Notes: generated from the letters alone by a model not told the origin. Shown: positions 4,773 to 59,930, numbered from the stretch's first letter. The stretch: 64,000 nucleotides of DNA from IMGVR_UViG_3300005529_000001:62001-126000, one strand, 5' to 3'. Numbers and translations are program-made.

Positions 4773-4802
4773 GATGGCAACCTACCACTTTCGTCCGTGA
4801 CC

Positions 4803-5105: not shown

Positions 5106-5164
5106 GACAGCATCCTAACACGCGCGTGCCCGACCTTTCACAGATCGGGCACGAGTTTTGTTGG

Positions 5165-5618: not shown

Positions 5619-5650
5619 GTCCCGATCCTACCTCAGCTCATCAGCGACTT

Positions 5651-5842: not shown

Positions 5843-6036
5843 CGCGGGCCCGCCCGGAGACCCGCGGCCTCCTGGATGTCGAGGCGCATCAGCCTGCACT
5901 CGTCTGCCGCAGTCACCAGCGCGTCTTGTTGGAGCTTGACCTGCGACGTCAGCTGCTCGATCTTGTCAGCTGCGTCGTTGTGGTTGAAGAGGCGGAGCTC
6001 TGCGATGAGCTGCTCGGTGGTCTTGCGCTTTGCCAT
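5839..6036 (-). CDS. hypothetical coiled-coil protein
   Basis: cassette promoter + ORF. Confidence 0.7.
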   Translation of the reverse strand: MAKRKTTEQLIAELRLFNHNDAADKIEQLTSQVKLQQDALVTAADECRLMRLDIQEAAGLRAGPR

Positions 6037-6119
6037 GGTCTCACTCTACCTGGATCTGCGGGTGATTTTCACCGAGCACCCGCGTCGGGGACACATCCAA
6101 CCCGTCTTGAGCCTGATCT

Positions 6120-6293
6120 TCATCGGTCGTCTCCACGCAGACGATACCCGTCCGCTCTGAGCGTTGCCTCGACGAGGCGTGAGCGCGGTGTCTCGAACGA
6201 GAACACGAAGCCCTGGGCTTCACGGACCTCCCGCTCGGCGATCGTCTCGAGCATCGTCTTCTTGTTGTCAACGGCGAGCGGGGAGCGCGGCAT
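6120..6293 (-). CDS. 57-aa hypothetical protein
   Basis: not in ORF track; TAGAGT-N6-ATG promoter. Confidence 0.6.
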   Translation of the reverse strand: MPRSPLAVDNKKTMLETIAEREVREAQGFVFSFETPRSRLVEATLRADGYRLRGDDR

Positions 6294-6308
6294 GTCCAGA
6301 CTCTACCC

Positions 6309-6545
6309 TCAGTAGCACGCCTGTTTCACCGAGGCCATGAAGCCCTGGGCGAAGAGCTGCTCCTCTTTCACGTCACGTGCTCCCGCTTCGGCCTTGAGCA
6401 TGAAAGCGGTGGGCGAGTCACCCGGGATGCCGAAGAACTCGGTGTCCAGGAAACGGTGCCGCAACGCGGCGATGCAACGCTCGGCGTTGCGCTTCGCCTC
6501 AGCCGGGCTGAACGGGTGGTCGATCATGATGATGTCCTGCACCAT
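6309..6545 (-). CDS. hypothetical protein
   Basis: cassette promoter + ORF. Confidence 0.7.
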   Translation of the reverse strand: MVQDIIMIDHPFSPAEAKRNAERCIAALRHRFLDTEFFGIPGDSPTAFMLKAEAGARDVKEEQLFAQGFMASVKQACY

Positions 6546-6577
6546 GATCGAATCCTACCTCGTTCTCGCCTGACCTT

Positions 6578-7006
6578 TCACTGCTTCAGGCCGAAGCCCT
6601 CGGTGACACCACGTGCTCGCCGGGCAGCTGCCGTCAGGTAGACGGTGTAGACGCGGCGCTCGTGGGCCTGGTAGGTGACGTACTGCAGGTCGTCGGCGAT
6701 GCTCCAGTAGACGTCGCTCTTCACCTTGTTCTCGTCCTCGACGAAGTCGGCCTCGCACTTCTGCCCATCGCCCGTCATCGCAGCGTGGGCCTGCACCTGC
6801 TTGAGGACCCGCTTCACCTGTTTCGGGTTCACCGCCTCGTCGTCGTAGGCGTATCCGGTCTCCGCTTCTGCCTCCTTGCGGTTCTCCGCGGTGATGCAGT
6901 ACTTGCCGTTGCAGCCGCAGGCGCAGCCGGGCTTGCCGCTGTACGCCTTGATGATGTCCGAGACGGTGAGGGAAGCGAGGTGTTGCTTGGCGGTGGTAGC
7001 GTCCAT
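6578..7006 (-). CDS. hypothetical protein with YSGKPGCACGC motif
   Basis: TATAGT-N6-ATG fixes the start. Confidence 0.75.
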   Translation of the reverse strand: MDATTAKQHLASLTVSDIIKAYSGKPGCACGCNGKYCITAENRKEAEAETGYAYDDEAVNPKQVKRVLKQVQAHAAMTGDGQKCEADFVEDENKVKSDVYWSIADDLQYVTYQAHERRVYTVYLTAAARRARGVTEGFGLKQ

Positions 7007-7038
7007 GACCAAACTATACCTCGCTTCCCCGTTGACTT

Positions 7039-7335
7039 TCACCGCCACTCGCAGGTGGCCGCGCGCCCGCCGGTGTACAGGTCCTGCATCTCTCCACACA
7101 CCCAGTGACGGGTGGTCTTGGCGACCGCGTGCTGGGGGACGCTGGCGACGATGGTGAACTCGTGGACCTGGATGACCTCGGGTGCCGCCGGGATGTCGAG
7201 GCTGGTGGGAGCCTCCAGCGCCGGGACGGGAACGCTCGGGTCGGCGTGGGAGCCGGTGCCCTGCGAAGCAAGGGCGATGCCAGTGCCGAGGAAGAGACCG
7301 ATGACCGCAGCGATGAAGAAGATGTGGAATTTCAT
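7039..7335 (-). CDS. secreted/membrane protein
   Basis: signal-peptide-like N-terminus; leadered promoter with AAAGGA SD. Confidence 0.7.
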   Translation of the reverse strand: MKFHIFFIAAVIGLFLGTGIALASQGTGSHADPSVPVPALEAPTSLDIPAAPEVIQVHEFTIVASVPQHAVAKTTRHWVCGEMQDLYTGGRAATCEWR

Positions 7336-7401
7336 GGGGTGGTGTCCTTTCCGTTGATGGACTGACTCTACCTCGATCTGCGCTGATCTTTCACAGGTTC
7401 A

Positions 7402-7528
7402 GCTCGTCGCTCCCAGTTGTCACTGGGCTCGCGCCGTGGGGCACCAGGCGTACTCGCTCCCGAGCAAGGAGCTTTCGGCCCAGCGGCTCTTCCCCGCCGG
7501 GAGCGACGAGCCGAGCCCGTGAGGGCTC
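7402..7528. ncRNA. candidate structured RNA
   Basis: perfect 13-bp closing stem 7402-7414/7499-7511 with internal hairpins, plus a GAGCCC-GTGA-GGGCTC hairpin; no credible ORF. Confidence 0.4.
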
Positions 7529-7534
7529 AGGCGT

Positions 7535-7729
7535 TCAGCTGTCGCCGAACATCTTGTCGTTGACGACGAATGACGTGGTCGCCGCGCACCACAGCAGGCA
7601 CAGCTGCTCATCCGTCATCGACGGGAAGGCGTTGCGGAGGTCATCGGTGCTCCCACCCGCGTTGTAGAGGATGGTGGCACGGGCGATGTCATCGCAGTTG
7701 GGGCGAGAATCGTAGCTTCCGATGTCCAT
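7535..7729 (-). CDS. hypothetical protein
   Basis: TACAGT-N6-ATG fixes the start. Confidence 0.7.
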   Translation of the reverse strand: MDIGSYDSRPNCDDIARATILYNAGGSTDDLRNAFPSMTDEQLCLLWCAATTSFVVNDKMFGDS

Positions 7730-7733
7730 GACC

Positions 7734-7829
7734 TTACTGTACCTCCTTTCCCTTCCGGCTTTCACTGATCTGCGTGAAGATGGAGACGACGCCGACACAG
7801 ATGAAGAAGAGCGCGATGCCAGGGTTCAT
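7734..7829 (-). CDS. 31-aa membrane micropeptide
   Basis: MNPGIALFFICVGVVSIFTQ...; own promoter. Confidence 0.6.
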   Translation of the reverse strand: MNPGIALFFICVGVVSIFTQISESRKGKEVQ

Positions 7830-7861
7830 GACCCCAGTCTATCCTGATCTGCGCTGACCTT

Positions 7862-8116
7862 TCACTCCGTGACGACGTTGCCGCGCTTGTCGTAGCGGAC
7901 GACGCTGTCAGCACCCGTCCCGTCCTGCGACGGCTCACCGACGACAGTGGTCTGGGTCACTTCAGACCAACCACCGGTCCCGTCGGGGACGTCAAGGCGC
8001 TGGGTGACCTGGACAGCGTTGCAGTTGTTGCAGACGTGGATGATGAGCCCGCCTCGAGAGCGAAGGGACTCGACCATGGCTGACCTGGGAAAGCGGTGCT
8101 TGGTGCAAGTGTCCAT
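7862..8116 (-). CDS. small Zn-binding protein
   Basis: CxxH...CNNC; cassette promoter. Confidence 0.75.
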   Translation of the reverse strand: MDTCTKHRFPRSAMVESLRSRGGLIIHVCNNCNAVQVTQRLDVPDGTGGWSEVTQTTVVGEPSQDGTGADSVVRYDKRGNVVTE

Positions 8117-8148
8117 GTCAGCATCCTACCATGATCTGCGTTGGTCTT

Positions 8149-8403
8149 TCACTCGTCGTCGTACTTCACGTACTCCGCCTTGATGGCGACGGTGTAGATG
8201 ATGTGCCCCTTCGGGGCGCCGGTGCCCTTCTGGTCGATGTCCTTGCGCATGGTGAACTCGCACGTGGTGGGCGTTCCGGGGGCGGTCAGGTCAACCACCG
8301 CGTTCGGGTGGGCGTCCAGCGAGTCAATGAACGGGTCCATCGGCGCCGCGAGCTCGCACGCGTCGATCATCGCCTGGGCGACCTGTATCAGGTTGGTGTC
8401 CAT
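8149..8403 (-). CDS. hypothetical protein
   Basis: cassette promoter + ORF. Confidence 0.75.
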   Translation of the reverse strand: MDTNLIQVAQAMIDACELAAPMDPFIDSLDAHPNAVVDLTAPGTPTTCEFTMRKDIDQKGTGAPKGHIIYTVAIKAEYVKYDDE

Positions 8404-8435
8404 GGTGTCAGTCTACCACGATCTGCGCGGCGCTT

Positions 8436-8690
8436 TCACCAAGTGCGGCGCTTCGTGTAAACAGCAAAGACGCCCTCCGTTGTGACGGACGCCCACACCC
8501 GCATCCAACCGTTGGCTTCCATGTCGGAGTCAGACTGTGACGACGTGCCGCTCGGGTAGGGCAACACCCGGGTGACGAAGGTGTCGCCACCGCGCTTTTG
8601 CGCAGCGCTAACGGGTGGGTCGATGTCGACCGAGCGTCCCGTTGTGCGGTCGAGAATGACGGTGTCTTCGGGAGAGAATCTGTTGTCCAT
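8436..8690 (-). CDS. hypothetical protein
   Basis: cassette promoter + ORF. Confidence 0.75.
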   Translation of the reverse strand: MDNRFSPEDTVILDRTTGRSVDIDPPVSAAQKRGGDTFVTRVLPYPSGTSSQSDSDMEANGWMRVWASVTTEGVFAVYTKRRTW

Positions 8691-8726
8691 GACAAGACTC
8701 TACCAGGATCTGCGCGATCCTTTCAC
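8691..8726 (-). promoter_or_regulatory. type example of the cassette promoter
   Basis: GTGAAA(8726-8721)-GGATCGCGCAGATCCTGG-TAGAGT(8702-8697)-CTTGTC-ATG; the TGA of the upstream gene lies within the -35 box. Confidence 0.9.
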
Positions 8727-8923
8727 CCGTCGACGTAGGCGGTGCCCTCGACCACGCGGGCGTTGATGCCCTTCTGCTTCAGGAAACGCTGGTACGCTTC
8801 GTCTTCCTGTTCGGCGTCGTAGCCGTCGGCGCCCGTGAAGATGCGGTCGTCCCGGGTCATCATCCCCAGCTCGGGGTGCCCGATGGTCGCATCGTCATAC
8901 TCGAGCTCGTACTTCTTGGTCAC
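8723..8923 (-). CDS. acidic hypothetical protein
   Basis: GTGA-coupled; stop in next -35 box. Confidence 0.7.
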   Translation of the reverse strand: MTKKYELEYDDATIGHPELGMMTRDDRIFTGADGYDAEQEDEAYQRFLKQKGINARVVEGTAYVDG

Positions 8924-9141
8924 GCTGGCACCGCCTTTCCGGGGATGAGGGTCCGCGTTGCGCGCTTCTGAGAGACGAGACCGCTGGCGAAGCCGTCAGC
9001 GAACTCGAACGAGGTGTTGCAGAGCCGGTAGTGCGCCTTCCGCAGCGCCAGCTTGAAACCGGGCTTGCGACAGGGGACCACCGCGACCCGCCCAGCGTGC
9101 GTGCCCTCGAGGACCTCGATCACGTTCCATGTTATGTCCAT
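8920..9141 (-). CDS. hypothetical protein
   Basis: cassette promoter + ORF. Confidence 0.7.
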   Translation of the reverse strand: MDITWNVIEVLEGTHAGRVAVVPCRKPGFKLALRKAHYRLCNTSFEFADGFASGLVSQKRATRTLIPGKAVPA

Positions 9142-9173
9142 GACTCCACTCTACTCCGATCTGTGCGGTGCTT

Positions 9174-9257
9174 TCACCGCGTGGAGAGGAAGCGCTTCCA
9201 AGCGACGATGCCGATGAACTCCAACAGCAACCAGCCTGTCAAGACGAGGTAGAGCAT
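9174..9257 (-). CDS. 27-aa membrane micropeptide
   Basis: MLYLVLTGWLLLEFIGIVAWKRFLSTR; own promoter; stop in next -35 box. Confidence 0.65.
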   Translation of the reverse strand: MLYLVLTGWLLLEFIGIVAWKRFLSTR

Positions 9258-9281
9258 GTAGCAACTCTACCTTGATCTGCG

Positions 9282-9617
9282 TCAGGCTTTCACCCTGACG
9301 TGGATGCTGAAGGAGTTCTCGTACGCCGTCTGCCCGTAGTACGAGCCGAGCAGCAGCTCGATGACGGTGCCATCGGGGAGCGTCTTGGTCAGGTCGGCAC
9401 CCCGCGACACGCGATCTCCCGTCGGGTCGGTGCCGACCGACGCGTGGCTGATGCTGAAGCCGTGGGCACGAGCATTGGCTGACACCCGAGCGAGCACCCG
9501 CGCGCCCGCGTGACCGTGGCGTTTCTCCCAGTCAGCCGACGTGGCAGTGACCCGGGTGCCAGCGCCGCCCGGGAACTTGATGTCCTTGAGTAGCTTCTTG
9601 AACTCTTTGGCGTCCAT
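9282..9617 (-). CDS. hypothetical protein
   Basis: cassette promoter + ORF. Confidence 0.75.
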   Translation of the reverse strand: MDAKEFKKLLKDIKFPGGAGTRVTATSADWEKRHGHAGARVLARVSANARAHGFSISHASVGTDPTGDRVSRGADLTKTLPDGTVIELLLGSYYGQTAYENSFSIHVRVKA

Positions 9618-9655
9618 GTCAGCAATCCTATCTTGATCTGCGGGCGGTTTTGCAC

Positions 9656-9850
9656 TCAGGGCGTGCCGAAGTCGGAGACGGCCTTCTCCATCACCGCCTT
9701 CCTGATCTGGACCTCCTTCAACGCCTTCTCCAGTGCATCCTCGAGCATCTGGAGCTGGTACAGCCCATCGTGGAGTGACCCAGCGATCGGGGACATGGTG
9801 TTGTTGATCGCTTCCTCGACCTCAGCAGTGAAACTCGGTCCGGGCATCAC
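9656..9850 (-). CDS. hypothetical coiled-coil protein
   Basis: promoter at 9862-9897 with GAGGTG SD. Confidence 0.65.
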   Translation of the reverse strand: MMPGPSFTAEVEEAINNTMSPIAGSLHDGLYQLQMLEDALEKALKEVQIRKAVMEKAVSDFGTP

Positions 9851-9893
9851 CTCACCTCCATGGTCATGTTATACCAGGATCTGCGCGATCCTT

Positions 9894-10199
9894 TCACACG
9901 TCGAGGCCGCAGTACTGCGTCACCAACACCTTGGTGCCGAAGACTTGGACCTTTGGCTCCTCCGAGAAGGAGCGACCTGGGCCACCGTAGTGACGGTCCC
10001 AGCCGGTGAGGACGTGTGCCAGGTCGTAGTCGTCGTCCTGTGCGCGGGGACCGATCGTGCGGAGCAGCTCCGCCTCGCACTCTGCCTTGTCCAGCACCAC
10101 GTACTTGGTGCACGAGGCCTCGCTGGGGTCACGGAAGGAGATGCCGCTGCGGAGGACGGTGAAGCCGGTGTCGATGGTGACGTGCTCGTTGGTTGCCAT
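9894..10199 (-). CDS. hypothetical protein
   Basis: cassette promoter + ORF. Confidence 0.75.
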   Translation of the reverse strand: MATNEHVTIDTGFTVLRSGISFRDPSEASCTKYVVLDKAECEAELLRTIGPRAQDDDYDLAHVLTGWDRHYGGPGRSFSEEPKVQVFGTKVLVTQYCGLDV

Positions 10200-10231
10200 G
10201 AGACCAGTCTACACTGATCTGCGCTTGGCTT

Positions 10232-10945
10232 TCACCGGTCCGAGCAGATTTCACAAGGAATGGGCATTCCCGTGGTGTCGGTGGGACAGAAGCCACCCGT
10301 GTTGGGGACCGACGACCCCGTCACCGAAACAACCCCGTTGGTGCACTTGACATCGAAGTAGCTGGAACAAGCGCTGCCCAGTCCCAAGCAGATGTTGACA
10401 TCGGAGCCGCTGGCAGCGAGACCCGTCGCGGTCGGGGTTGCGCTGCTGTAACGTTGGTAGTAGTCGATGCGGACCTCGCCCCCACAGGTGCCGTTGACGA
10501 CGAACTTGCCCGGGACGGTGTCGCCGAACGCGATGTCCATGCCCGGGATGTCGAAGGTGTACGAGTAAGTGTTGGGACCCGCCGCAGCTTCGGGCGCGGC
10601 GTCCGCGGCAACCACGACGTCAGCAGTCACCACGTCAGGGTCAGACCCAGCGTCGGGGTCACTGGGAGCGTCGGTCCCAGCGTCGACAGTGGAACCTGCC
10701 TCGACGTCCTGCTTGGTGAGCTTGGGGCTGTCGGTGAGCCCCGCGTCGGGGACGACCGCTGAGGCTTCGGGGACGGGCGTCGCGTCGGGAACGGGCGGGT
10801 CACCTGCGTCATCTCCAGCGAACCCAGCTTCACCCATCGGCTGGGCGATCGGCTTGTTGAGGGGCGGGACGTTCTCAGGGCCCGAGAAAGCGCTGCCGCC
10901 GCAGGCGACGAGGAAGAGAGCCGTGATGGCGACTGTGTGTCTCAT
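10232..10945 (-). CDS. lipoprotein with D-A-G low-complexity linker and Cys-rich C-terminal domain
   Basis: lipobox LVAC-GG; repeated DAG/DAA; cassette promoter. Confidence 0.75.
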   Translation of the reverse strand: MRHTVAITALFLVACGGSAFSGPENVPPLNKPIAQPMGEAGFAGDDAGDPPVPDATPVPEASAVVPDAGLTDSPKLTKQDVEAGSTVDAGTDAPSDPDAGSDPDVVTADVVVAADAAPEAAAGPNTYSYTFDIPGMDIAFGDTVPGKFVVNGTCGGEVRIDYYQRYSSATPTATGLAASGSDVNICLGLGSACSSYFDVKCTNGVVSVTGSSVPNTGGFCPTDTTGMPIPCEICSDR

Positions 10946-48283: not shown

Positions 48284-51200
48284 ATGATCAAGTGCCAGAT
48301 GTGCCGCGGCTCTGGGTGGTACCAGTCGTCGCCAGGCAACAGGAGCCAGTGTCCGTATTGCAACGGACGTGGTAGCATCAACGAGAACTCGCCCAGCGAG
48401 CAACGTAGAGCTCGTGACTTCGAGTCTTTCTATGGCGATGACCTCAATCGAGCTGGTTATAGCACGAAAGAGATCAGCCGCATCTTGGAGGAGAAGTCGG
48501 GCCAGATCGTACAAGCGCTGAAGACGATGCCTGTGAAGGGCCCTATCGCTTCGTCTCAGGTCGGTCGCCCGCCCCAACTTCGTCCCACACGAGTGCCATA
48601 TAAGCTTGACTCTGACGAGAAAGAGCGGCTCAGGCAACTTCGTGATCCTTCGCAACAGACTTTGCCTCCGACGCAGGCAACATCAACTGATGTAAAGCGC
48701 CAACAAACAGAAGTAGTTTCCAGTCACACAACGGCGAAAGCCACAGAAAAGAGAGCAGACATCATGGGAGAAGACGACATTCGCGGCCGACGGGCGCAGG
48801 ACATGATCCTAGCCCCGAACGAGTACGCATACATCAGCGACGAGACCAAGGGCGAAGTCAACGTCTTCGTCGGCCCCAACAAGCAGTCGCTTGCGGGCAC
48901 TGACCAGATGGTCAAGTTCGACACCAAGACGAAGCGGTTCTCGCCGACGTCACGTGAACAGGGCAACCAGCTGTTCCAGACGGCTCCCGAGGGCTGGTAC
49001 GTCGTCCTGAAGAACCCGGCCGAGGGCGACAAGCACCCGGCTGGCAGCGGCAAGCTATCGACCCCCACCCTTCGGGTCGGTAAGAAGGTTAACATCTCCG
49101 GTCCCTGTTCCTTTGCTCTCTGGCCCGGTCAGATGGCCAAGGTCGTCCAGGGCCACTCGCTGAAGTCGAACGAGTACCTGCTGTGCCGGGTCTACGATGA
49201 AGAGGCTGCACGGGCCAACTGGTCCAAAGCAGTCATCAAGACGCAGGGCGAGGCAACGACGGGTGAGGGCGCAGATGCAACTCCGAAGAACCAGCGTCCC
49301 GCCAAGGTGGTGAAGGCTGGCAGCGAGATCCCGTCCGAGGGCGAGCTCACGATGGGCAAGCTCTTCGTGGTCCGTGGCACTGAGGTCTCCTTCTACATCC
49401 CGCCGACGGGCATCGAGGTCGTCGCTGATGGTGAGAAGTATGTCCGCGAGGCCGTCTCTCTGGAACGCCTCGAGTACTGCTTGCTCCTCGACCAGAACGG
49501 CAACAAGCGATACGTCATCGGTCCCGACGTCGTGTTCCCGCGACCGACCGAGAAGTTCGTCGAGGCGCCGATCAAGTCCAACCCGGACAAGGTCAAGGCC
49601 AAGAAGTTCCGTGCCCAGGAGCTGACTCCAACGAGCGGCATCCACATCCGCGTCATCTCGGATTACACCGAGAAAGACGGCACCAAGCGCACCGCGGGTG
49701 AAGAGCTCTTCATCACGGGCAACGAGCAGCCGGTGTACTTCCCCCGTGAGGAGCACGCCATCATCAAGTACGGCGAGCAGGATGTCCACTACGGAATCGC
49801 GATCCCGCCGGGCGAGGCTCGCTACGTGCTGAACAGGCTCACCGGCGAGGCGAGCCTGGTCGACGGTCCGAAGATCTTCCTTCCCGATCCCCGGACGCAA
49901 GTCATCCTCCAGCGCGCCATCCCGCTCGACATGTGCGCTCTCCTTTACCCCGGCAACGAGGAGGCTCTCGCGATCAACGCGGCTCGCCTCGGCGTCGAGG
50001 ACCAGGACTACATGGGTGCTGGTGGAGCAAACGCCGCGTTCCTCAACAGCACTTACGAGCGTAACGCTGGCGAGAACGAGGCCTATGCTGCGGTCGCTGC
50101 AGCGGCTCCGAATGACACCGCTCGCGGTCGCATCCTGATCAAGTCGGCGAGCAAGTCCCTTCCGGGCGACGCCTTCGATCGGAAGGCGAAGTTCACTGCG
50201 CCGCGCTCCGTCATCCTCAACACCAAGTACGACGGCGCCATCGGCATCAACCTCTGGACCGGCTACGCCATGCTGCTCGTCAGCAAGGGCGGCAAGCGCC
50301 GGGTAATCCAGGGACCGGGCACCTTCATGTTCGAGTACGACGAGAACCCGCAGCTCATCTCGCTGTCAACGGGCAAGCCGAAGTCGACCGACAAGCTCTG
50401 CAAGACGTACTACTTGCAGGTCACCAACAACATGGTCAGCGACATCGTCGAGGTCGAGACCAGGGACTTCTGCCGGCTCACTGTCAAGCTGAGCTACCGA
50501 GTCAACTTCGAAGGCAACTCCGAGAAGTGGTTCGCGGTTGACAACTACGTCAAGTTCCTCTGTGACGCGATGCGGTCACGCATCCGCTCCGCGGTGCAGA
50601 AGCTGGGCATCGAGGAGTTCTACGGCAACCACACGCCAATCCTGCGTGACATCATCCTGGGTGCCAAGCCCGCCGAGGGTGGCGAGCGCACAGGCACCAT
50701 GTTTGCCGAGAACGGCATGCGAATCTACGATGCTGAGGTCCTTGGCATCCAGATGCAAAACCAGGACGTCGAGAAGCTCCTGGTCGCTGCACAGCGGTCC
50801 GTCATCCAGAACACCCTCGTCCTTGCTGAAGAGCGGCGCAAGCTGGACTTCGTCAAGGAGACCGAGGAGCTCAAGCGGGAGACAGCTTCCGCTCAGGCCG
50901 AGACGACCCGGGCAACCCTCGAGTTGCAGCGAGTCAACGCCCAGCGCAAGCTGGAGCTTGACCTGGCCCTGATCGCCAACAGCGCCAAGCAGCAGAGCGA
51001 GCAGCTTGCTGTCGAAGCAGCAACGACGGCAGCCCGAGCCACTCTCAACCTGGCCAACGAGAAGGCCGCGGCGGAAGTTGCGGCAGTCGAGCTGGAGACC
51101 GCTGAAGCCCGTCAGGCTTCGGAACGAACGCACCAGGCCGCCCTACAGGCCCTCGAGCTCGCCAAGCTCACGGCCCAGACAGAAGCGACCAAGGAGAAGG

Positions 51201-51436
51201 CAACCGCCATCAGCCCGCAGCTAGTCGCGGCGCTAGAAGCGGCGGGCAACAAGGAAGTGGCGATGAAGCTCGCTGAGTCCTTCAACGTGCTGGGCATCAT
51301 CGGCGGCGGCAAGAAGAGCGTCGCCGAGATCTTCAGTGAGCTGCTCAAGGGCACCGTGCTGGGCCCCCAGCTCGCCGCGGTGGTCAAGGGTGAGAAGAGC
51401 GAGTCGAACGGTTCGAGCAAGACGGCTCGAGCCTGA
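48284..51436 (+). CDS. major vault protein (MVP) homolog with N-terminal Zn-finger extension
   Basis: MVP-type repeats (LAPNEYAYISD..GEV..FVGP; RYVIGP; GIHIRVISDY..KDGTKRTAGEELFITG; YVLNRLTGE..LVDGP); shoulder domain LSTGKPK...SDIVEVETRDF..L.VKLSY..NF...F.V.NYV..LC.A..SRIR.AV...F.ENG; long Ala/Glu-rich cap helix; second possible start at 48764. Confidence 0.85.
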   Translation: MIKCQMCRGSGWYQSSPGNRSQCPYCNGRGSINENSPSEQRRARDFESFYGDDLNRAGYSTKEISRILEEKSGQIVQALKTMPVKGPIASSQVGRPPQLRPTRVPYKLDSDEKERLRQLRDPSQQTLPPTQATSTDVKRQQTEVVSSHTTAKATEKRADIMGEDDIRGRRAQDMILAPNEYAYISDETKGEVNVFVGPNKQSLAGTDQMVKFDTKTKRFSPTSREQGNQLFQTAPEGWYVVLKNPAEGDKHPAGSGKLSTPTLRVGKKVNISGPCSFALWPGQMAKVVQGHSLKSNEYLLCRVYDEEAARANWSKAVIKTQGEATTGEGADATPKNQRPAKVVKAGSEIPSEGELTMGKLFVVRGTEVSFYIPPTGIEVVADGEKYVREAVSLERLEYCLLLDQNGNKRYVIGPDVVFPRPTEKFVEAPIKSNPDKVKAKKFRAQELTPTSGIHIRVISDYTEKDGTKRTAGEELFITGNEQPVYFPREEHAIIKYGEQDVHYGIAIPPGEARYVLNRLTGEASLVDGPKIFLPDPRTQVILQRAIPLDMCALLYPGNEEALAINAARLGVEDQDYMGAGGANAAFLNSTYERNAGENEAYAAVAAAAPNDTARGRILIKSASKSLPGDAFDRKAKFTAPRSVILNTKYDGAIGINLWTGYAMLLVSKGGKRRVIQGPGTFMFEYDENPQLISLSTGKPKSTDKLCKTYYLQVTNNMVSDIVEVETRDFCRLTVKLSYRVNFEGNSEKWFAVDNYVKFLCDAMRSRIRSAVQKLGIEEFYGNHTPILRDIILGAKPAEGGERTGTMFAENGMRIYDAEVLGIQMQNQDVEKLLVAAQRSVIQNTLVLAEERRKLDFVKETEELKRETASAQAETTRATLELQRVNAQRKLELDLALIANSAKQQSEQLAVEAATTAARATLNLANEKAAAEVAAVELETAEARQASERTHQAALQALELAKLTAQTEATKEKATAISPQLVAALEAAGNKEVAMKLAESFNVLGIIGGGKKSVAEIFSELLKGTVLGPQLAAVVKGEKSESNGSSKTARA

Positions 51437-51518: not shown

Positions 51519-53435
51519 ATGGATGTTTTCAGCTCACACCTCGGCCTCATCATTGGGGGCGTGGTCTTCCTGTTCGCGGTGTTGCTCCATCGCATGGTGC
51601 TACGCCTTTTCGGGATGGTCGTCATCCCCGAAGACGGCATCGGCATCGTCACAAAGAAGTTCGTGCTCTTCGGAACCAACAAGGTCCTGCCTGACGGAGC
51701 CGTCGTCGCTCTCCAGGGCGAAGCTGGCGTCCAGGCTGACACCCTCGCGCCGGGCGTTCACTTCGGTCTCTGGCCTTGGCAGTTCGACATCGCAGTCCAG
51801 AAGTTCGTCACCATCGCCCGAGGCAACCTGGGTGTTGTCGTCGCTCGGGACGGCAAGGCGATCAGCGGAGGTCGCATCTTGGGCCGCACCGTCGAGTGCG
51901 ACTCCTTCCAGAACGCCAGGCAGTTCCTGCAGTCAGGCGGCGAGCGCGGACCCCAGCTAGCGATCATCCCGCCCGGGACCTACCGCATCAACACCGGGCT
52001 CTTCACCATCCAGATGACTGACGTCACCGAGGTCCATGACAACATGGTCGGCGTCGTCACCACCAAGGAGGGCCAGGCTCTCGACACGGGTGCCATCGCG
52101 GGACCCGAGGTCCCCGATCACAACATGTACCAGGACCCGCAGAAGTTCCTGAACGGCGGTGGCCGCAAGGGTCTCCAGGAGCAGGTGATCCTGGCGGGAC
52201 GTTACTACATCAACCCGCTCTTCGCCACTGTCGAAGAGGTCGCGATGACAGAGGTCCCCATCGCCCAGGCAGGCGTCGTCATCGCCTTCGTCGGCAAGGA
52301 AGGCGTCGATGTCACAGGTGACTCGTTCAAGCACGGCAACCTGGTCAGCAAGGGCCAGCGTGGTGTCTGGGCCGACCCGCTCGATCCCGGTCGCTACCCG
52401 ATCAACCCCTACACCCACCGGGTCGAGAACGTGCCGACAGCAAACATCGTCCTGAACTGGGCGACGGGCAAGTCGGAAGCTCACAACCTCGACAAGAACC
52501 TCAGCACCATCACGGTGCGGTCCAACGACGGGTTCACGTTCAACCTGGATGTCTCGCAGATCATCCACATTCCCAGGGCCAGCGCCTCGAAGGTCATCGC
52601 CCGGTTCGGCAACGTCGCCAACCTGGTCACCCAGGTCCTGGAACCGACGATCGGCAACTACTTCCGCAACGCGGCACAGGGTTCCGACGTCATCAAGTTC
52701 CTCGGTGCCCGCCAGGAACGCCAGAACGATGCCAAGAAGTCGATCGGTGACGCGCTCAATGACTACGACGTTGTCGCGGTTGACACCCTGATCGGAGACA
52801 TCACTCCGCCGAAGGAGCTGATGAAGACCCTGACTGACCGCAAGATCGCTCAGGAAGAACAGGCAACGTTCCAGACCCAGCGCCAGGCGGAAGAGCAGCG
52901 CAAGGACCTCGAGCAGGCCCGAGCGACCGCAGCCACCCAGGCCAAGGTCGTCGATGCCGAGCGGAAGGTCGCCATCGCTGAGTTCGAGGCCCAACAGGCG
53001 GTGAAGAAGGCCGAAGGTGACTCTCGGTCGATGGTCATCAATGCCAGGGCCAGCGCCGAGATGGACGTCGTCAAGGCCGAGGCGGCAGCGAAGGTCAAGA
53101 CGGCGATCGCCGAAGCGGAAGCCAAGGCAACCGTCCTCAACGGTGATGCCCAAGGCAAGTCGATCGCCGCGGTTGGTACCGCAGAAGCCGCGGTCATCAA
53201 GGCCAAGGCGGACGCGGTCGACCAGACCAACTACGCTACGATCGAGGTCGCTCGGGCTCTCGCCAATGGCAAGCACCCGCTCGTTCCCCAGATCGTCGCA
53301 GGCGGCGGTGGCGAGGGCGGGGGCATGAACAACCTGACCAGCGTCCTGATGGCCAACCTCATCGACAGGGAGAGCCACCAGCCAAAGGTGAACGGCACTG
53401 CAACTCGCAAGCCCTCCGAGAAGTCGTCAGACTGA
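51519..53435 (+). CDS. SPFH/flotillin-family membrane protein
   Basis: N-terminal TM; repeated GVV...G.Q...L.PG.Y.IN units; SPFH core (ITVRSNDGF.F.LDVSQI...VLEP.IGNYFRN); AEA-rich coiled coil; LVP.I..GG tail. Confidence 0.9.
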   Translation: MDVFSSHLGLIIGGVVFLFAVLLHRMVLRLFGMVVIPEDGIGIVTKKFVLFGTNKVLPDGAVVALQGEAGVQADTLAPGVHFGLWPWQFDIAVQKFVTIARGNLGVVVARDGKAISGGRILGRTVECDSFQNARQFLQSGGERGPQLAIIPPGTYRINTGLFTIQMTDVTEVHDNMVGVVTTKEGQALDTGAIAGPEVPDHNMYQDPQKFLNGGGRKGLQEQVILAGRYYINPLFATVEEVAMTEVPIAQAGVVIAFVGKEGVDVTGDSFKHGNLVSKGQRGVWADPLDPGRYPINPYTHRVENVPTANIVLNWATGKSEAHNLDKNLSTITVRSNDGFTFNLDVSQIIHIPRASASKVIARFGNVANLVTQVLEPTIGNYFRNAAQGSDVIKFLGARQERQNDAKKSIGDALNDYDVVAVDTLIGDITPPKELMKTLTDRKIAQEEQATFQTQRQAEEQRKDLEQARATAATQAKVVDAERKVAIAEFEAQQAVKKAEGDSRSMVINARASAEMDVVKAEAAAKVKTAIAEAEAKATVLNGDAQGKSIAAVGTAEAAVIKAKADAVDQTNYATIEVARALANGKHPLVPQIVAGGGGEGGGMNNLTSVLMANLIDRESHQPKVNGTATRKPSEKSSD

Positions 53436-54451: not shown

Positions 54452-54759
54452 CAGACCCGACGTGGTGGCGTTTCAACCAGGAGCCTGACGGAAAGGTAGA
54501 TCCGGAGGCTTTCCACTGGACCCACGTCAAGCCCGGTGATGTCGTCCAATCACGTGGGACAAACGCATTCCGCCAGCGTGATTTCGTCGGGCGGACGATG
54601 GACACAAAGGTTCTCACCCTTGCTCGCAGCCCCGTCCTAGTCCTGTCCAGACACGAGGGCATCCCGGGCGAAGAGTCTCCCGGTGATACAGTCACTTTCA
54701 CTTGCTTGTCACGCCATGGGATCATCATCGTTCTCCAATCGGTGAAGAGAAAAACGTGA
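54448..54759 (+). CDS. PG-family barrel protein (divergent)
   Basis: KPGDVV...VLVLS. Confidence 0.55.
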   Translation: MTDPTWWRFNQEPDGKVDPEAFHWTHVKPGDVVQSRGTNAFRQRDFVGRTMDTKVLTLARSPVLVLSRHEGIPGEESPGDTVTFTCLSRHGIIIVLQSVKRKT

Positions 54760-55010
54760 CACGCACCAAACGGAAAAGGCTCTTTTTAGAGAAAGACCCA
54801 CCCAAGCCAGGTGACCTGGTCTTGCTGAAGCGTGGCCATGCTTTCCGGACCCTCCCTCAAGGCAAGGGAGGACTTGTCAGGTACAGCCGCGAAGATGAAG
54901 TTGCGTTGCTCATCGGGTTTGATCATTTCCTAGAAGATGCGTTGTTGCTGTCGTTGGGTAGCTACACAATGGGCTGGTATGACGTTAGAGAGTACACGAT
55001 CGTTCCTTGA
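54756..55010 (+). CDS. SH3b-like paralog
   Basis: KPGDLV...ALLIG...MGWY. Confidence 0.65.
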   Translation: MTRTKRKRLFLEKDPPKPGDLVLLKRGHAFRTLPQGKGGLVRYSREDEVALLIGFDHFLEDALLLSLGSYTMGWYDVREYTIVP

Positions 55011-55759
55011 AAGGTGATCGAAAACTACGCGTGGTGGCGAAGTATATTGAGAGGGTGACGCCTAAATTTCTCGTCTACACCATGTATTGTGGTGAGTTTG
55101 ACTTCAATCACTGCGTGAGAGCCATTGCCTCACAACGTGACGTGGAGGTCAAGCACGAGGTCGTCAGCTACCTTCCAGAAATGGAAGCACACAACGTCGT
55201 CTACCAGGCGTTCAACGCCGCGGGACCCGAGTGGTACCGTGCTAAGATCGACGCTGACGTAGAGCTGCTTGATGATCGCGTCCTGCAACGGGCGGCTCAA
55301 CGGTTCAGGGAGTTGCCCCTCGCCCACGGGATCAGCCCGTTGGTTCACGATTATCTCTCTGATAGCGAGATCCATGCAGGCGTGAATTTCTACACTCACC
55401 ATGTTGGGTTTGATGTCCAAAAAGACAACTTGCGATGCGATCGTGGCATGGTCTTTAGGGAGTCTGAGCACTGGCTTGGCGGTGACATGCCCGTTGTTGG
55501 CAAGCACATGCATCATTGCAACGAGCTGGCAGCATTCAGGTACGGGTTCCATCGTGGTATGAAGGGGCAGATCTCGATCCGCGACAAGGTTAAGGTTGCT
55601 TCAGAGAAACACGTAGCTGACACACGTAATCACCTTCGTGCTTTAGCATTGAAGGGATTTGATGTGGGACTTTCAGCAAATCGCAACATCGGTCACAACT
55701 ACGGTGACAGTGACCTCATGGACGCATTCAAACGAGCAACCGCACAAGGATCTCAATGA
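55007..55759 (+). CDS. glycosyltransferase-like protein (GT-A)
   Basis: C...IASQ, AKIDADV (DxD); start uncertain. Confidence 0.5.
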   Translation: MKGDRKLRVVAKYIERVTPKFLVYTMYCGEFDFNHCVRAIASQRDVEVKHEVVSYLPEMEAHNVVYQAFNAAGPEWYRAKIDADVELLDDRVLQRAAQRFRELPLAHGISPLVHDYLSDSEIHAGVNFYTHHVGFDVQKDNLRCDRGMVFRESEHWLGGDMPVVGKHMHHCNELAAFRYGFHRGMKGQISIRDKVKVASEKHVADTRNHLRALALKGFDVGLSANRNIGHNYGDSDLMDAFKRATAQGSQ

Positions 55760-56622
55760 GATACGTTGACATTATCAAGATGCGTGCCGCTTGCAAGTCA
55801 GCCGCTGAGACGTTGCAATACGTGGGTGGGTTGGTCAGGCCAGGCATCACCACTGCGGAGATCGACAGGCTTGTTCACAATGATACCGTCAGACGTGGTG
55901 GCAAGCCCGCGCCCTTGAACTACAGGGGATTCCCCAAATCATGCTGCACGTCGATAAACGACGTCGTCTGCCACGGCATCCCAGACAAGACGGTGCTAAA
56001 AGAAGGTGACATCGTCAACATTGACGTGACGACGATCCTCGATGGACACTTCGGTGACACCAACGCCACGTTCTACGTGGGACAGGTGAAGCCCGAAGTC
56101 GAGCGGTTCGTGTCACGTGCAGCGATGGCGATGTGGGCAGGCATCCACGTCGTCCGCCCGGGCATCAAACTAGGAATGGTGGGCCAAGCGATCGAGGCTT
56201 ATGCCAAGAGTGAAGGGTACAGTGTGGTCAGGGATTTCGGCGGTCACGGCATTGGCCGGATCTTCCACGCCAAGCCACATGTCCATCACTTTGCCAATGA
56301 TGAGGGTCCGGTCCTCAAGGTCGGCGACACCTTCACCATCGAACCCATGATCAACATGGGTGGGCCCGACGTGGTCATCGACAAAGCTGACAGCTGGACA
56401 GCGCGGACTGCTGATGGCTCGCTCAGTGCGCAGTTCGAAAACACCGTCCTTGTAACAGATGATGGTGTTGAAGTGTTGACAATGGCAGAGAGCCCAGACG
56501 TCCAGTGTCACGTTTGTGGCACTTGGAGCTGGCTCGAGGGCAGCGATCCCGTCAAGTGGGGCTGGACAGAGAAAGAGGGTAGGTGGACGTGCAAGCAGTG
56601 CAGAACCAATGAGTCACCTTGA
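55756..56622 (+). CDS. map: methionine aminopeptidase type I with C-terminal Zn-ribbon tail
   Basis: FPKSCCTSINDVVCHGIP, DIVNIDVT, GDT, GHGIG..FH, TIEPMI, SAQFE; tail CHVC...CKQC. Confidence 0.92.
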   Translation: MRYVDIIKMRAACKSAAETLQYVGGLVRPGITTAEIDRLVHNDTVRRGGKPAPLNYRGFPKSCCTSINDVVCHGIPDKTVLKEGDIVNIDVTTILDGHFGDTNATFYVGQVKPEVERFVSRAAMAMWAGIHVVRPGIKLGMVGQAIEAYAKSEGYSVVRDFGGHGIGRIFHAKPHVHHFANDEGPVLKVGDTFTIEPMINMGGPDVVIDKADSWTARTADGSLSAQFENTVLVTDDGVEVLTMAESPDVQCHVCGTWSWLEGSDPVKWGWTEKEGRWTCKQCRTNESP

Positions 56623-56848
56623 TGACTACCCGCTCATTGAGCTTGATCGGGTCGAGGGCGGTCCCATTGACGACGCTAAGCCCGGTGATTTCGTGAGGTA
56701 CAGCAACGAACCTGCTACCACGTTTGGGATGCTGATCGCCCGGGTTGACAGGGGATCGTTTCACGGTGACGTGGTGATGGTGCTGTGGTCACAAGCACCC
56801 GTCGCCCGCCTCAGCTCCAGCCGCGTCAACAGGTGGGAGGATCTGTGA
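56609..56848 (+). CDS. SH3-like 'VLWS' family protein
   Basis: KPGDFV...FGMLIA...VLWS..P. Confidence 0.7.
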   Translation: MSHLDDYPLIELDRVEGGPIDDAKPGDFVRYSNEPATTFGMLIARVDRGSFHGDVVMVLWSQAPVARLSSSRVNRWEDL

Positions 56849-57303
56849 GCCAGCTCGAGCGAGTGACGACTCGAGACGTGTGGTGCCCGTCTGAGGAGTA
56901 CCCGTCGCCCGGCGTCTTTGTCAAGCACATCGCGGACGACAAGTCCTTGGGCATGATCGTTGGTCGCGAGGGAACTGACCTTCTAGTCCTGTGGTCAAAG
57001 CAACCGTTTCACATCAAGATTGAGACACGAGACATCAAGCCAACGTCGCGGAAGCTTCGCATCAAGTTCAGTGTTGTTCCTGACGTCATGTCGCCAGAGT
57101 TCCAACAACTAGCGCAGCACGAGGTGCATGAGGATTTCGCCCCGGGTGAGCTGACGCCGAGCGGGATCAACTGGTACCAACGTCACGGTGGACGGGTAAC
57201 ACTTCACCAGGACGGACACGCTGAGGTTGACCGAACCGTGAGTGACCTCGGAGAGTACGATCTTAAAAGAGCTCAAGTGGAATATGAAACTCGACGTCGT
57301 TGA
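56845..57303 (+). CDS. SH3-like 'VLWS' protein fused to a gp23-like capsid fragment (middle region)
   Basis: SPGVFV...LGMIVG...VLWS..P then IKIETRDIKPTSRKLRIKFS. Confidence 0.65.
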   Translation: MSQLERVTTRDVWCPSEEYPSPGVFVKHIADDKSLGMIVGREGTDLLVLWSKQPFHIKIETRDIKPTSRKLRIKFSVVPDVMSPEFQQLAQHEVHEDFAPGELTPSGINWYQRHGGRVTLHQDGHAEVDRTVSDLGEYDLKRAQVEYETRRR

Positions 57304-57658
57304 CAAGAAAGAAGTCGAACACGAGCTCAAGCCTGGTCAGCTGTGGCAATGGGTTTTTGATGTCGAAATGCCAAACGTTCCCAAAGGTTGGTGGATGGCG
57401 CAGAGGGTGACTGAAGAGGGTCGGCGCTTAGGCATCGCCGCAAACCACCCATTCATCATGAGTTATGGGATGACATTCGTCATCATTCACCCTGATGATA
57501 CGGGCCCTTACCAATACAACCTCACTCACGTTGATGAGAACGGGCTCGTACAGTCTGACCCACCCCTACGTTATCACGTCGTCCTCATCGGAGACACACT
57601 TGTCTGGTTCCAACATGATTGGTTAAAATCATGCACATTGCTGACTGACGTGGAGTAG
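57284..57658 (+). CDS. PG-family barrel protein (divergent)
   Basis: LKPGQLW...VVLIG..LVW. Confidence 0.55.
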   Translation: MKLDVVDKKEVEHELKPGQLWQWVFDVEMPNVPKGWWMAQRVTEEGRRLGIAANHPFIMSYGMTFVIIHPDDTGPYQYNLTHVDENGLVQSDPPLRYHVVLIGDTLVWFQHDWLKSCTLLTDVE

Positions 57659-57678
57659 GATAACGATGCCATGCGTTA

Positions 57679-57978
57679 GTGATGCTTACAACAATTCGCA
57701 ACGACATGCAATCACGGCGGCAGGTCCAACGACGCTTTCCGCCGGGCTCGTTCATCATCAATCACCCCGGCGATCGGATCGCGCTCGTCGTGGGTTGGGG
57801 ACCGACGGAGTCCACACTTCGGCAGTCGATCACCGAACCCAGCCGGATGTTAGGACGGCCTCGTTCATGGGTCGCTTACATCATCGAGGACAACAGGATC
57901 AAGACCGTCATGTGGGAGGTCGTCCGGGATGGATACACGATGGAAGAGTGGGAGGCTCTCCGTGAAGCTGGTCCGTGA
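57679..57978 (+). CDS. PG-family barrel protein (divergent)
   Basis: PPGSFI...ALVVG. Confidence 0.55.
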   Translation: MMLTTIRNDMQSRRQVQRRFPPGSFIINHPGDRIALVVGWGPTESTLRQSITEPSRMLGRPRSWVAYIIEDNRIKTVMWEVVRDGYTMEEWEALREAGP

Positions 57979-58318
57979 AAAAGACGTCAACAGGGGTCAC
58001 CTGGTCAGGACTATCTGTGCGGGTGATCCCAACACTCCCCTGTTGCCGGGCGACATGGTCAGGCACTGGCAAGACTCCCAGAGCTCGGGCACCGTCATCT
58101 CAGTCTCAGACGATGGACGGGTGAATGGCGACCTTGAAGCGATGGTGCTCTGGACGAAGCTGCCCTTCAACGGACAATACCCTCCCTCGCCAGTGATGCC
58201 CACGGACACCAACCCGTGTGCAGAAGTCACGTTGATGACCGACATGTTCACAGCTGGCATCATCAGCAAGAAGACGATGTACGAACACCTCGGACTGGAT
58301 CCAGATGAGCAACCTTAA
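57962..58318 (+). CDS. SH3-like 'VLW' protein with an RNR-like TNPCAE motif in its tail
   Basis: LPGDMV...GTVIS...VLWT..P then TNPCAEVTL. Confidence 0.6.
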   Translation: MKLVREKDVNRGHLVRTICAGDPNTPLLPGDMVRHWQDSQSSGTVISVSDDGRVNGDLEAMVLWTKLPFNGQYPPSPVMPTDTNPCAEVTLMTDMFTAGIISKKTMYEHLGLDPDEQP

Positions 58319-58712
58319 AACGTATGAAGGCCAGCTAGCGCGTGATATCGTGAGCATTGACGCTCGATCCTTTCAAGTCAGCGAACACACATTAGCAATC
58401 TGTCTTTCTCCGGGCGATTGGGTCAAGCACCGCTTTTACGAACGAGCTCCGGGTTTAGGCATGTTGGTTGCTGTCGGCAAGAAACGTGATTCCTTGATGA
58501 AAGAGATCGATTTTATCACGGTCCTGTGGTCAGTTGAACCCACAAACCCGTTCAATGCGTTGTCACCCAGCCTCGTGTACGCTCCATACATCCCGCTTGT
58601 AATAACGCCAACAGTGATTGAAACCGAGTCACCCGTCGCCGCTTATCAATACCATCGTAAGTTGGTAAACAAGTCATATTTTAGCAGCATCAAAGTCAAG
58701 GACATCAAGTGA
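58305..58712 (+). CDS. SH3-like 'VLWS' protein fused to a gp23-like capsid C-terminal fragment
   Basis: SPGDWV...LGMLVA...VLWS..P then VYAPYIPL..TP...KLVNKSYFSSIKVKDI. Confidence 0.75.
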   Translation: MSNLKTYEGQLARDIVSIDARSFQVSEHTLAICLSPGDWVKHRFYERAPGLGMLVAVGKKRDSLMKEIDFITVLWSVEPTNPFNALSPSLVYAPYIPLVITPTVIETESPVAAYQYHRKLVNKSYFSSIKVKDIK

Positions 58713-59317
58713 GCGCTCTCAAAACATACGGTCGCTTGTTCAATGACGAGGATGGGAAATATTACCCCTGGGACTTCCGGCTCACCAACGGGTGTGGCAA
58801 TCCCAACTGTGATGTGTTAGCTCCTGGCGAGTGGGTAGAACACAGATCCTGGGGTGGCTTCGGGATGATCATCGCCATTGATGATCAGCAAATCACCATC
58901 CTGTGGAGCGAAGAGCCCCACACCCCAACATTCCCCAGCATTGCGGGCCTGACTCACCGCGTCAACATGCAACAGGTGGCTCAAGCTCTGATTGCAGTCC
59001 AGCCGATGTCACTGCCCGCAGGTGCCATCTTCTACATGGACTACACGTATGGAGGTTACAAGCTCGACCCCAGGTGCAACGAGGGTCCCCTGTGGCGTAG
59101 GATGTTCTGGCGAGCATGCCTGTACACGTCTACACGGATCCAGTCGTGGTGGTCGTCTTTCTCATCCTGGTCACGCTCCTTGTTGTCCAAGCCTACCATA
59201 CCAATCGAGCCCGATCAGTTCGAAAAGGAACTGAAGAACATCATCACAAGATGCGGGAGACGGACGACGGCCAGCAAGCCAAAGGCCCTGCCCACAAAGA
59301 CGCCTGAGGGAGGTTGA
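58709..59317 (+). CDS. SH3-like 'ILWS' protein fused to a gp23-like capsid fragment (Gol region)
   Basis: APGEWV...FGMIIA...ILWS..P then LIAVQPMSLPAGAIFYMDYTYG. Confidence 0.75.
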   Translation: MSALKTYGRLFNDEDGKYYPWDFRLTNGCGNPNCDVLAPGEWVEHRSWGGFGMIIAIDDQQITILWSEEPHTPTFPSIAGLTHRVNMQQVAQALIAVQPMSLPAGAIFYMDYTYGGYKLDPRCNEGPLWRRMFWRACLYTSTRIQSWWSSFSSWSRSLLSKPTIPIEPDQFEKELKNIITRCGRRTTASKPKALPTKTPEGG

Positions 59318-59320
59318 CCA

Positions 59321-59611
59321 GTGCCCCCGGTCCGCCCCCAAGAAAACCCGTACAAGCCCGGTGATTGGGTCACCATGGCACAGGGAAACGGTGCTGGTGA
59401 GGGAATCCTGTGGCGGGTCAACAAAGTTGATGGCAGCTGGATCAAGATCGAACCCGCGTGGGCGGTGACAGGGCGCAGCGTGCTCCGACCGAAGCGGGTG
59501 CAATACTTCCAAGTAGATGCAGCCGATATCGTCCAGCTTGGTTCCGCCTTCCAGCAACTCTCAAACATCATCCGCGACATTGCTATCTCGCGAGGCATGG
59601 ACCGTGAGTGA
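59321..59611 (+). CDS. barrel + helix protein, paralog of 59604-59930
   Basis: KPGDWV...I.PAW...DIV.LG..F...IRD.A..GMD. Confidence 0.65.
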   Translation: MPPVRPQENPYKPGDWVTMAQGNGAGEGILWRVNKVDGSWIKIEPAWAVTGRSVLRPKRVQYFQVDAADIVQLGSAFQQLSNIIRDIAISRGMDRE

Positions 59612-59930
59612 GGGTGACCTGGTTATGTGGCACGGCAAGCAGACTGAGCACACATCGCTCAAGAACAGGGTCGTTTACCAGGTGATGCAGGTCGAGGAGA
59701 GGGACAGCGACCTGATCGGGACGATGGTCACCTTCAAGCTCCGACCCGCGTTTGACATCGGCCAACCGATGGGCGTTGCTGTTCACACCATCTCATGGTC
59801 GAGCAGCGAGCTACGCAAGGTGACGCTGGTTGACCTCGGCGTCATCAGGCTCTCATTTGACAATTTCATCCGTGAGTATGCCCGAATGTTGGGCATGGAA
59901 ACGACGGACAATGAACTTCCCGGAACGTGA
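59604..59930 (+). CDS. barrel + helix protein, paralog of 59321-59611
   Basis: EGDLV...L.PAF...TLV.LG....FIRE.A..GME. Confidence 0.65.
   Translation: MSEGDLVMWHGKQTEHTSLKNRVVYQVMQVEERDSDLIGTMVTFKLRPAFDIGQPMGVAVHTISWSSSELRKVTLVDLGVIRLSFDNFIREYARMLGMETTDNELPGT

Follow-up and report, generated by a model that had tools for sequence, protein, structure and literature searches.

A tandem array of small genes lies on the plus strand of a 64,000-nucleotide stretch of DNA (the window) that corresponds approximately to positions 62,001-126,000 of IMGVR_UViG_3300005529_000001 (369,475 bp), the genome of a T4-like huge phage. The GC content is 52-67% across the window and small genes are densely packed. 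Five genes of the array, A, B, E, F and G, encode proteins that begin with a common N-terminal module, referred to here as the carrier, with the consensus PG..V.H...G.G.VIA...VLWS..P, and that diverge directly after its final proline. Three of the tails that follow resemble segments found in the major capsid protein (MCP) encoded elsewhere in the same genome, and relatives of these proteins also display fragments of the portal protein. The proteins belong to a modular, conserved family in which a barrel is fused to a peptide that stems from the MCP or portal of the phage itself; the family is held under constraint and encoded apart from the real head genes.

A preliminary description of this locus, made from the sequence alone, had claimed five coupled open reading frames (ORFs) with a common N-terminal module that part company after its last proline, and this is borne out. 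The GTG start codons of B and G overlap the stop codons of A and F, forming GTGA at the A/B and F/G boundaries, and the five products are 79-202 amino acids (aa) long. The P, G, G and W of the carrier motif are invariant among 17 family members, and the L, S and P are nearly so.

The tail of G is the best match when an MCP hidden Markov model (HMM) built from 79 IMG/VR MCPs is run against all six frames of the window (E 2.6e-11). It scores 28.2 bits with the Pfam Gp23 profile (PF07068), above the gathering cut-off of 24.4 (E 1.6e-6, positions 6-45 of 376), and matches PHROG 138, major head protein (E 2.6e-7). The window copy corresponds to residues 88-122 of the phage's own MCP, to which its core is nearly identical, and the G class to residues 77-125, equivalent to 87-135 of T4 gp23. 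The tail of F is the second-best match of the MCP HMM (E 2.5e-6, HMM positions 486-535, the C-terminus) and finds a huge-phage MCP by BLASTP (E 2e-7). It maps to residues 585-637 of the own MCP (585-638 for the class; gp23 444-521), and the stop of the F ORF coincides with the end of the MCP. The tail of B alone gives no significant match to the Gp23 and MCP profiles, aligning to the own MCP at the expected position, residues 385-404, with an E-value of 0.08 (gp23 approximately 252-271; class limits 381-424, gp23 248-291). However, its orthologue at locus L125 passes Pfam Gp23 at 31.1 bits, and a profile made from B-type tails, the window copy among them, matches the MCP profile with E 4.4e-6 (portal control, 0.68). 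It is on account of these two results that B is accepted as derived from the middle of the MCP.

Thus, of the three tails that had been matched to three gp23 segments in the preliminary description, those of G and F are significant in their own right, and that of B is weak alone but is upheld through its orthologues and tail profile. The gp23 strings quoted there are found in the T4 record, and the comparison with the phage's own MCP that it proposed gives identities of 57% over 35 aa for G, 55% over 20 aa for B and 30% over 53 aa for F. The fragments had also been described as out of capsid order. This applies only to G, which is displaced; B, then a spine-helix segment (S) found only in relatives, then F follow the order of the capsid protein.

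Judged from their sequences, the fusions are MCP-derived fragments and not capsid proteins, since the tails cover only positions 6-45, 136-175 or approximately 328-356 of the 376-position Gp23 profile, the proteins are of 79-202 aa, and a separate gene encodes a 640-aa MCP. One member of the family is labelled 'Major capsid protein Gp23' in one annotation source, which is misleading.

The intact head genes are found in the ENA copy of the genome (369,506 bp), in a T4-type head module (locus L130) comprising terminase, a 713-aa Portal_T4 protein, a Peptidase_S77 prohead protease and the 640-aa Gp23-family MCP. No complete MCP was found within the window by the six-frame search with the MCP HMM. 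In ENA coordinates G is a reverse-strand gene at about 37 kb, and the MCP is encoded on the forward strand. The array and the head genes are thus separated by at least 148 kb, whether the genome is linear or circular. The intact MCP and portal genes of the same genome rule out that the array is a split or decayed capsid gene, a conclusion that the preliminary description had reached on other grounds.

Table 1. Genes and features of the array, its surroundings and the head module.
Feature	Position	Strand	Content
Repeated motif	window 4553-10235	-	11 copies of GTGAAAG-N6-GCAGATC-N2-GGTAGAG
Vault-like gene	window 48284-51436		1050-aa major-vault-protein-like product (MVP_shoulder E 6.8e-29, plus vault repeats)
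SPFH/Band-7 gene	window 51519-53435		638-aa product
Flanking small gene	window 54702-55010		PGD.V-type barrel motif
Methionine aminopeptidase	window 55756-56622		M24 family, Cys-rich C-terminal extension
Member A	window 56609-56848	+	carrier motif 56681-56800, then 15-aa tail
Member B	window 56845-57303	+	carrier motif 56908-57006; MCP-mid-like segment 57013-57072; then C-terminal part common to B orthologues
Gene C	window 57284-57658	+	small interleaved gene outside the carrier family; kept in L003 and L132
Gene D	window 57679-57978	+	small interleaved gene, RRQVQRRF.PGSF motif; kept in L003, L125, L129 and L134
Member E	window 57959 (or 57929)-58318	+	carrier motif 58046-58165; tail motifs NPCAEVTL and ISKKTMYEHLGLDP
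Member F	window 58305-58712	+	carrier motif 58410-58541; MCP C-terminus copied as tail, 58560-58706
Member G	window 58709-59317	+	carrier motif 58823-58918; MCP N-proximal segment 58949-59062; Cys-x2-GP(L/W)W motif; basic W/R/S-rich helix ~59090-59185 (G residues 128-159)
Flanking small genes	window 59321-59611, 59517-59930		PGD.V-type barrel motif
Related flanking genes	L125:1879-2289, L134:3537-3992		PGD.V-type barrel motif
eIF-1a/IF1-like genes (PF01176)	L125:12553-12819, L139:14758-15027		small genes
Peptide deformylase	L130:5886-6380		inside the head module
Full-length MCP	ENA contig 257,951-259,873	+	640-aa Gp23-family protein

Orthologous arrays are found on other huge-phage contigs (L003, L125-128, L129, L132, L134, L137-140). 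A carrier profile of 40 positions, searched against 1.84 billion representative proteins, retrieved 366 of them at E<=1e-3; among the best 150, 147 are proteins of 63-243 residues with an N-terminal carrier and three are repeat-protein false positives. The profile does not detect gene D. The MCP HMM is matched by 76 of these 150, in three position classes only (approximately 67-123, 282-333 and 477-535). A search for the same architecture with other tails, as had been suggested in the preliminary description, thus yielded a family with fixed junctions, together with portal fragments and the fourth MCP segment, S, whose tail profile matches the MCP profile with E 2.5e-6. Two types of portal tail were recognised, and their profiles match the portal profile with E 3.7e-10 (X) and 8.6e-9 (A). 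With domain limits taken from PMC4493910, X corresponds to residues 288-304 of the own portal (T4 gp20 323-339) in the clip domain, and A to residues 310-347 (gp20 345-382), spanning the end of the clip, the channel loop and stem helix alpha7.

Within the same best 150, G-type tails are the commonest (45), followed by the B type (23, of which 11 by motif only) and the F type (19). There are seven X-type tails (two by motif), six of the S type (by motif), two of the A type (one by motif) and at least three of the E type (by motif). The other 45, which include the three false positives, are unclassified and many are shorter than 20 residues. In all, approximately 105 of the 150 bear one of the four MCP or two portal segments. 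No source proteins besides MCP and portal were identified with Pfam or PHROGs, or when the tails were compared by BLAST with T4 structural proteins and the head module. No relatives were found in bacterial or archaeal genomes with the patterns used, and among GenBank phages only the MCP of a 484-kb huge phage was matched, with no carrier. The family consists of tandem, translationally coupled genes on huge-phage contigs with T4-type head genes. Literature searches returned no description of such a family and no profile library names it; it appears from sequence comparison to be new in architecture.

The two remaining tails in the window are less readily placed. That of member A has no match to anything; the orthologous position in L129 and L132 is occupied by a portal fragment, and the A-type tail of L129 passes Pfam Portal_T4 (PF07230) at 23.6 bits against a cut-off of 22.9, over positions 269-306 of 433 only. 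No window member gives a significant portal match. The tail of E is kept in L129, P0136, P0137, P0169 and P0269, and its NPC.EV motif is absent from the head proteins compared. Its assignment as a portal crown fragment was not accepted: it matched many portals at 431-456, but with E-values of 1.5-6 (0.24 by hhalign).

The tails are maintained in a way that is not expected of debris. In G-type proteins the MCP homology starts at HMM positions 67-77, from -3 to +5 residues from the end of the carrier, and B-type proteins are alike; junctions are fixed and frames intact in dozens of lineages. Among representatives clustered at 50% identity, conservation scores for the MCP-like segment and the carrier are 0.48 and 0.44 in the G type, 0.48 and 0.40 in the F type and 0.41 and 0.46 in the B type, compared with 0.21-0.32 for leaders and downstream parts (0.26-0.32 for the G flanks), bearing in mind that types are defined by a still-detectable match. 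The Q, P, M, F and D of the motif QPM..P.G..FY.DY.YG are invariant in 32 G-type proteins. Comparison of G orthologue pairs, among which dS is near saturation throughout, shows pN to be well below pS in the segment, and in the four pairs with unsaturated dS the dN/dS ratio, which the preliminary description had proposed to compute, is approximately 0.10-0.31, indicating purifying selection. Rather than lacking gp23 matches, or being frameshifted or unconstrained in their orthologues, the MCP-like tails show matches, intact frames and constraint. Pseudogene debris was rejected on the intact frames of the loci read and of the 150 representatives, the carrier-like conservation of the segment and the dN/dS values.

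On a tree of the MCP segment, 40 G tails cluster together (2 label changes, compared with 34 when shuffled). The approximately unbiased test does not reject one G-tail clade (p 0.97), and G branches are longer than those of real MCPs; these data fit a single origin of the G type. Where the types are present in the loci read, their order in the array is X/A (portal), B, C/D, S or E, F and lastly G, with the exception of L125, in which X lies between F and G, and many arrays are without one or more types. Tails have been swapped between carriers, since one carrier subtype, that of B (DVWCPSEEYPSPGVFV), bears the MCP-mid tail in the window, the portal-A tail in L132/P0145 and the E-type tail in P0136/P0183. 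The B gene of the window looks, from its sequence, like a recombinant, and swapping is most simply explained by recombination between tandem paralogues. There are also variant proteins: in P0128 a B-like piece, a carrier and an F tail lie within one protein, and P0203 and P0207 carry an apparently longer contiguous B+S stretch of MCP. These variants hint at how the tail types arose.

The carrier is an N-terminal beta-barrel of approximately 70 residues, made up of a leader strand (MS.L.TY) and the PG...VLWS..P core. AlphaFold2 models of G and F contain a confident barrel at residues 1-70/80 (predicted local distance difference test, pLDDT, 85-96), the conserved N-terminal strand included, while the MCP-like tails are of low confidence (pLDDT ~50-64), that of F being plain coil. 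The preliminary description had called the module an SH3-like barrel. A small barrel is what is modelled, but an SH3-like identity was not confirmed: the Pfam hints are all sub-threshold (MSSS SH3 E 0.19, Tudor_1_RapA 0.096, SH3-B_UBE2O 0.17), Foldseek searches, made twice against PDB and once against BFVD, gave best matches with E >0.03, and a PDB profile search with the barrel returned nothing. 'SH3-like' may thus serve only as a loose label for the modelled fold. PADLOC and NCBIfam models did not match any of A-G. Beyond its MCP-like segment the G type retains a near-invariant cysteine, the GP(L/W)W motif and the W/R/S-rich basic helix, which the G model shows as a long helix (pLDDT ~80) and which possibly binds membrane or nucleic acid.

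A carrier that is an intein or split intein was ruled out, as there are no intein matches in Pfam and no Hint motifs, and the junction, LW(S/T)..P, is without HN. Inteins do occur in 28 of 120 related portals (among P0301-P0387), which are then 940-1232 aa long and mostly contain an HNH endonuclease. Numbered on this phage's own intein-free portal, the intein sites (~82, 97, 141, 300-316, 352-398 and 468) do not overlap the displayed segments.

The surroundings of the array have features of their own. The major-vault-protein-like (MVP-like) gene, which is followed in the window by the SPFH/Band-7 gene, is also found just 5' of the array in L003, L125, L132, L134 and L139; a vault-like protein kept across these huge-phage contigs is unusual on its own account. 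The methionine aminopeptidase gene lies immediately upstream of the array, as it does in L139, and the head module contains a peptide deformylase, so that the phage encodes two N-terminal processing enzymes. The eIF-1a/IF1-like gene belongs to the conserved neighbourhood of relatives. Further small-protein families with a PGD.V-type barrel motif lie beside the array, one of them with a conserved C-terminal L..Y..LG..IRD.A..G helix, and the region resembles a 'nursery' of small barrel proteins. The T4 late-promoter motif was not found in the window or the head module, and scans for sigma-70 promoters and terminators were at chance level. The repeated motif of Table 1, of which no copies are expected by chance, stands a short way upstream of the start codon (ATG) in a succession of small genes, with three copies at an exact spacing of 287 bp; it is a phage-specific promoter-like or regulatory motif and is absent near the array.

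The displayed segments are among the best-conserved stretches of the phage's own head proteins and occupy particular places in them. T4 gp23 has an inserted I-domain held by two long linkers, the equivalents of the HK97 E-loop, which make contacts within and between capsomers (PMC9546572). G and B flank this insertion, S extends B into the spine helix and F comprises the C-terminal strands. The MCP sources are thus four, namely an N-proximal strand, the spine helix, the strand that precedes this helix, and the C-terminal strands, and this mapping suggests that the displayed pieces represent the conserved core of P-domain, linker and spine helix, without the A and I domains. The portal sources are in the clip and in the channel-loop/stem-helix region. 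The G tail also has a functional parallel in T4. The Gol region is taken here to be residues 93-122 of gp23, and G, aligned to gp23 87-135 through the own MCP, so spans it. Gol is a 29-residue peptide from the first quarter of gp23, the most conserved part, which binds EF-Tu and activates the Lit protease (PMC3014915).

What the fusions do can be stated only conditionally, and the reading favoured, tentatively, is that they mimic head proteins towards the host, as decoys or antagonists of capsid and portal sensors or co-factors. The barrel would act as a soluble carrier presenting a head-protein peptide as a competitive ligand. The likeliest targets would be host proteins that recognise hard-to-mutate segments, either sensors of immunity that MCP or portal sets off, or a co-factor, for example EF-Tu. 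By filling the recognition site without supplying the full activating signal, the fusions would blunt a capsid- or portal-triggered defence once the real MCP and portal appear. This host-directed reading is preferred because Gol provides a precedent for a short linear MCP peptide that suffices to engage a host protein, because the core of the window G tail is nearly identical to the own MCP, and because MCP and portal recur as triggers of known sensors, among them CapRel, Avs and SpbK (PMC13728456). The preliminary description had offered epitope decoys and poisons of competing phages as alternatives; given that near-identity, a self-mimic fits better than a poison for other phages. It is possible, if doubtful, that the array as a whole shows the phage's own invariant capsid and portal peptides gene by gene, neutralising several sensors or co-factors such as EF-Tu, and so constitutes a general counter-measure to the recognition of conserved virion proteins as patterns.

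Several points weigh against a host-directed role. If simple binding is enough to fire a sensor, a mimic would trigger it and not block it, and EF-Tu is too abundant to titrate. The B and F tails of the window have drifted far from the own MCP, which is odd for a faithful decoy, and no promoter evidence of early expression was found. Avs-type receptors are reported to read folds and not short peptides (PMC13728456). The chosen segments are also subunit-interface and core elements (PMC9546572, PMC4493910), so that a role in assembly fits equally.

Such a role is a close rival, and the computed results fit either. The tails may bind complementary surfaces of unassembled MCP or portal subunits, acting as caps by which the phage's own head assembly is delayed or steered, or poisoning that of related co-infecting phages, and this too is possible but doubtful. 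The MCP segments (I-domain-linker and P-domain strands, spine helix and C-terminal strands) make contacts within and between capsomers in T4 (PMC9546572), the portal segments lie in the channel loop, the stem helix and the clip, where subunits join in a sheet and terminase is bound (PMC4493910), and the models predict tails that are disordered on their own, as would be typical of strands folding by augmentation. However, the tails resemble the own MCP as much as any other, so that a poison would strike the phage itself as well, and the array lies far from the head genes, on the opposite strand. To our knowledge there is no precedent for phage-encoded assembly regulators of this kind.

Two further explanations are ranked lower. 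Pieces G, B, S and F might re-associate as they do in the MCP P-domain, zipping the fusions into a hetero-complex in which the barrels or the extra C-terminal parts do the real job. The four segments are indeed strands and a helix of one structural unit, and G and B must sit side by side in the MCP because both flank the inserted I-domain; several phages have B, S, F and G together in a fixed order, G and B carry further conserved sequence at their C-terminal ends, and the synteny of the array with the MVP-like gene leaves room for a tie to the neighbouring vault-like protein. Set against this, one or more types are missing from many arrays and portal-derived tails do not fit such a complex; the zipper is improbable. 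That the fragments are neutral or selfish remnants, persisting without function after the spread of a carrier gene split a duplicated portal-MCP module into pieces, is very improbable. It would account for the precedence of portal fragments over MCP fragments, the capsid order of B, S and F, the longer B+S piece of P0203 and P0207, the eroded A, B and F tails of the window and the very short tails of many family members, but not for segments as conserved as their carrier, a dN/dS well below 1, invariant motif residues in the G type, or intact frames and fixed junctions across dozens of lineages.

Bacterial immunity keys on conserved virion proteins, which are hard for phages to mutate. If the host-directed reading is true, a gene family that grafts such invariant segments on a carrier would amount to a novel type of counter-strategy; if instead the fusions act in assembly, they would represent a new kind of assembly control or an inter-phage weapon. 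The family points to short pieces, four of the MCP and two of the portal, that are possibly 'seen', and it may help in asking what keeps the Gol region so strongly conserved. The tails are near enough to T4 proteins for tests in E. coli with T4. Short metagenome proteins named 'Major capsid protein Gp23' of the kind described here are not capsid proteins.

A number of known systems share elements with the array. In the T4 internal-protein targeting sequence and in encapsulin cargo peptides, a short appended peptide decides which shell protein is bound. These peptides are not copies of shell proteins and their cargo is an enzyme or effector, whereas here a barrel of ~70 aa is joined to an MCP or portal copy. 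The nearest analogues for an assembly-directed role are the satellite redirectors P4 Sid and SaPI CpmB, small MCP-binding proteins that alter assembly; unlike the array, they are not MCP-derived, come from satellites and not from the phage, and do not constitute a family built on several segments. Virion-gene fragments are kept as separate small ORFs in T4 alt.-1 and alt.-2 (T4 record annotation), although these are simple local duplicates, without a common carrier, a family or evidence of conserved design. Phage anti-defence mimics and decoys, such as DNA and antitoxin mimics (PMC13728456), copy a recognised molecule in order to occupy a host protein, as is putatively the case here. Those known copy DNA, nucleotides or antitoxins with one dedicated fold, and no multigene family showing fragments of its own virion proteins on a common carrier was found in the literature. 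Another close parallel is Gol, in the Lit/EF-Tu exclusion system, a short linear peptide within the best-conserved part of a T4-type MCP that is active alone as a ligand of a host protein (PMC3014915) and that is equivalent in position to the G tail. Gol, however, lies within the capsid gene and triggers defence, whereas in the array the equivalent region has been placed in a dedicated, conserved barrel fusion, and other segments of the head proteins are displayed likewise.

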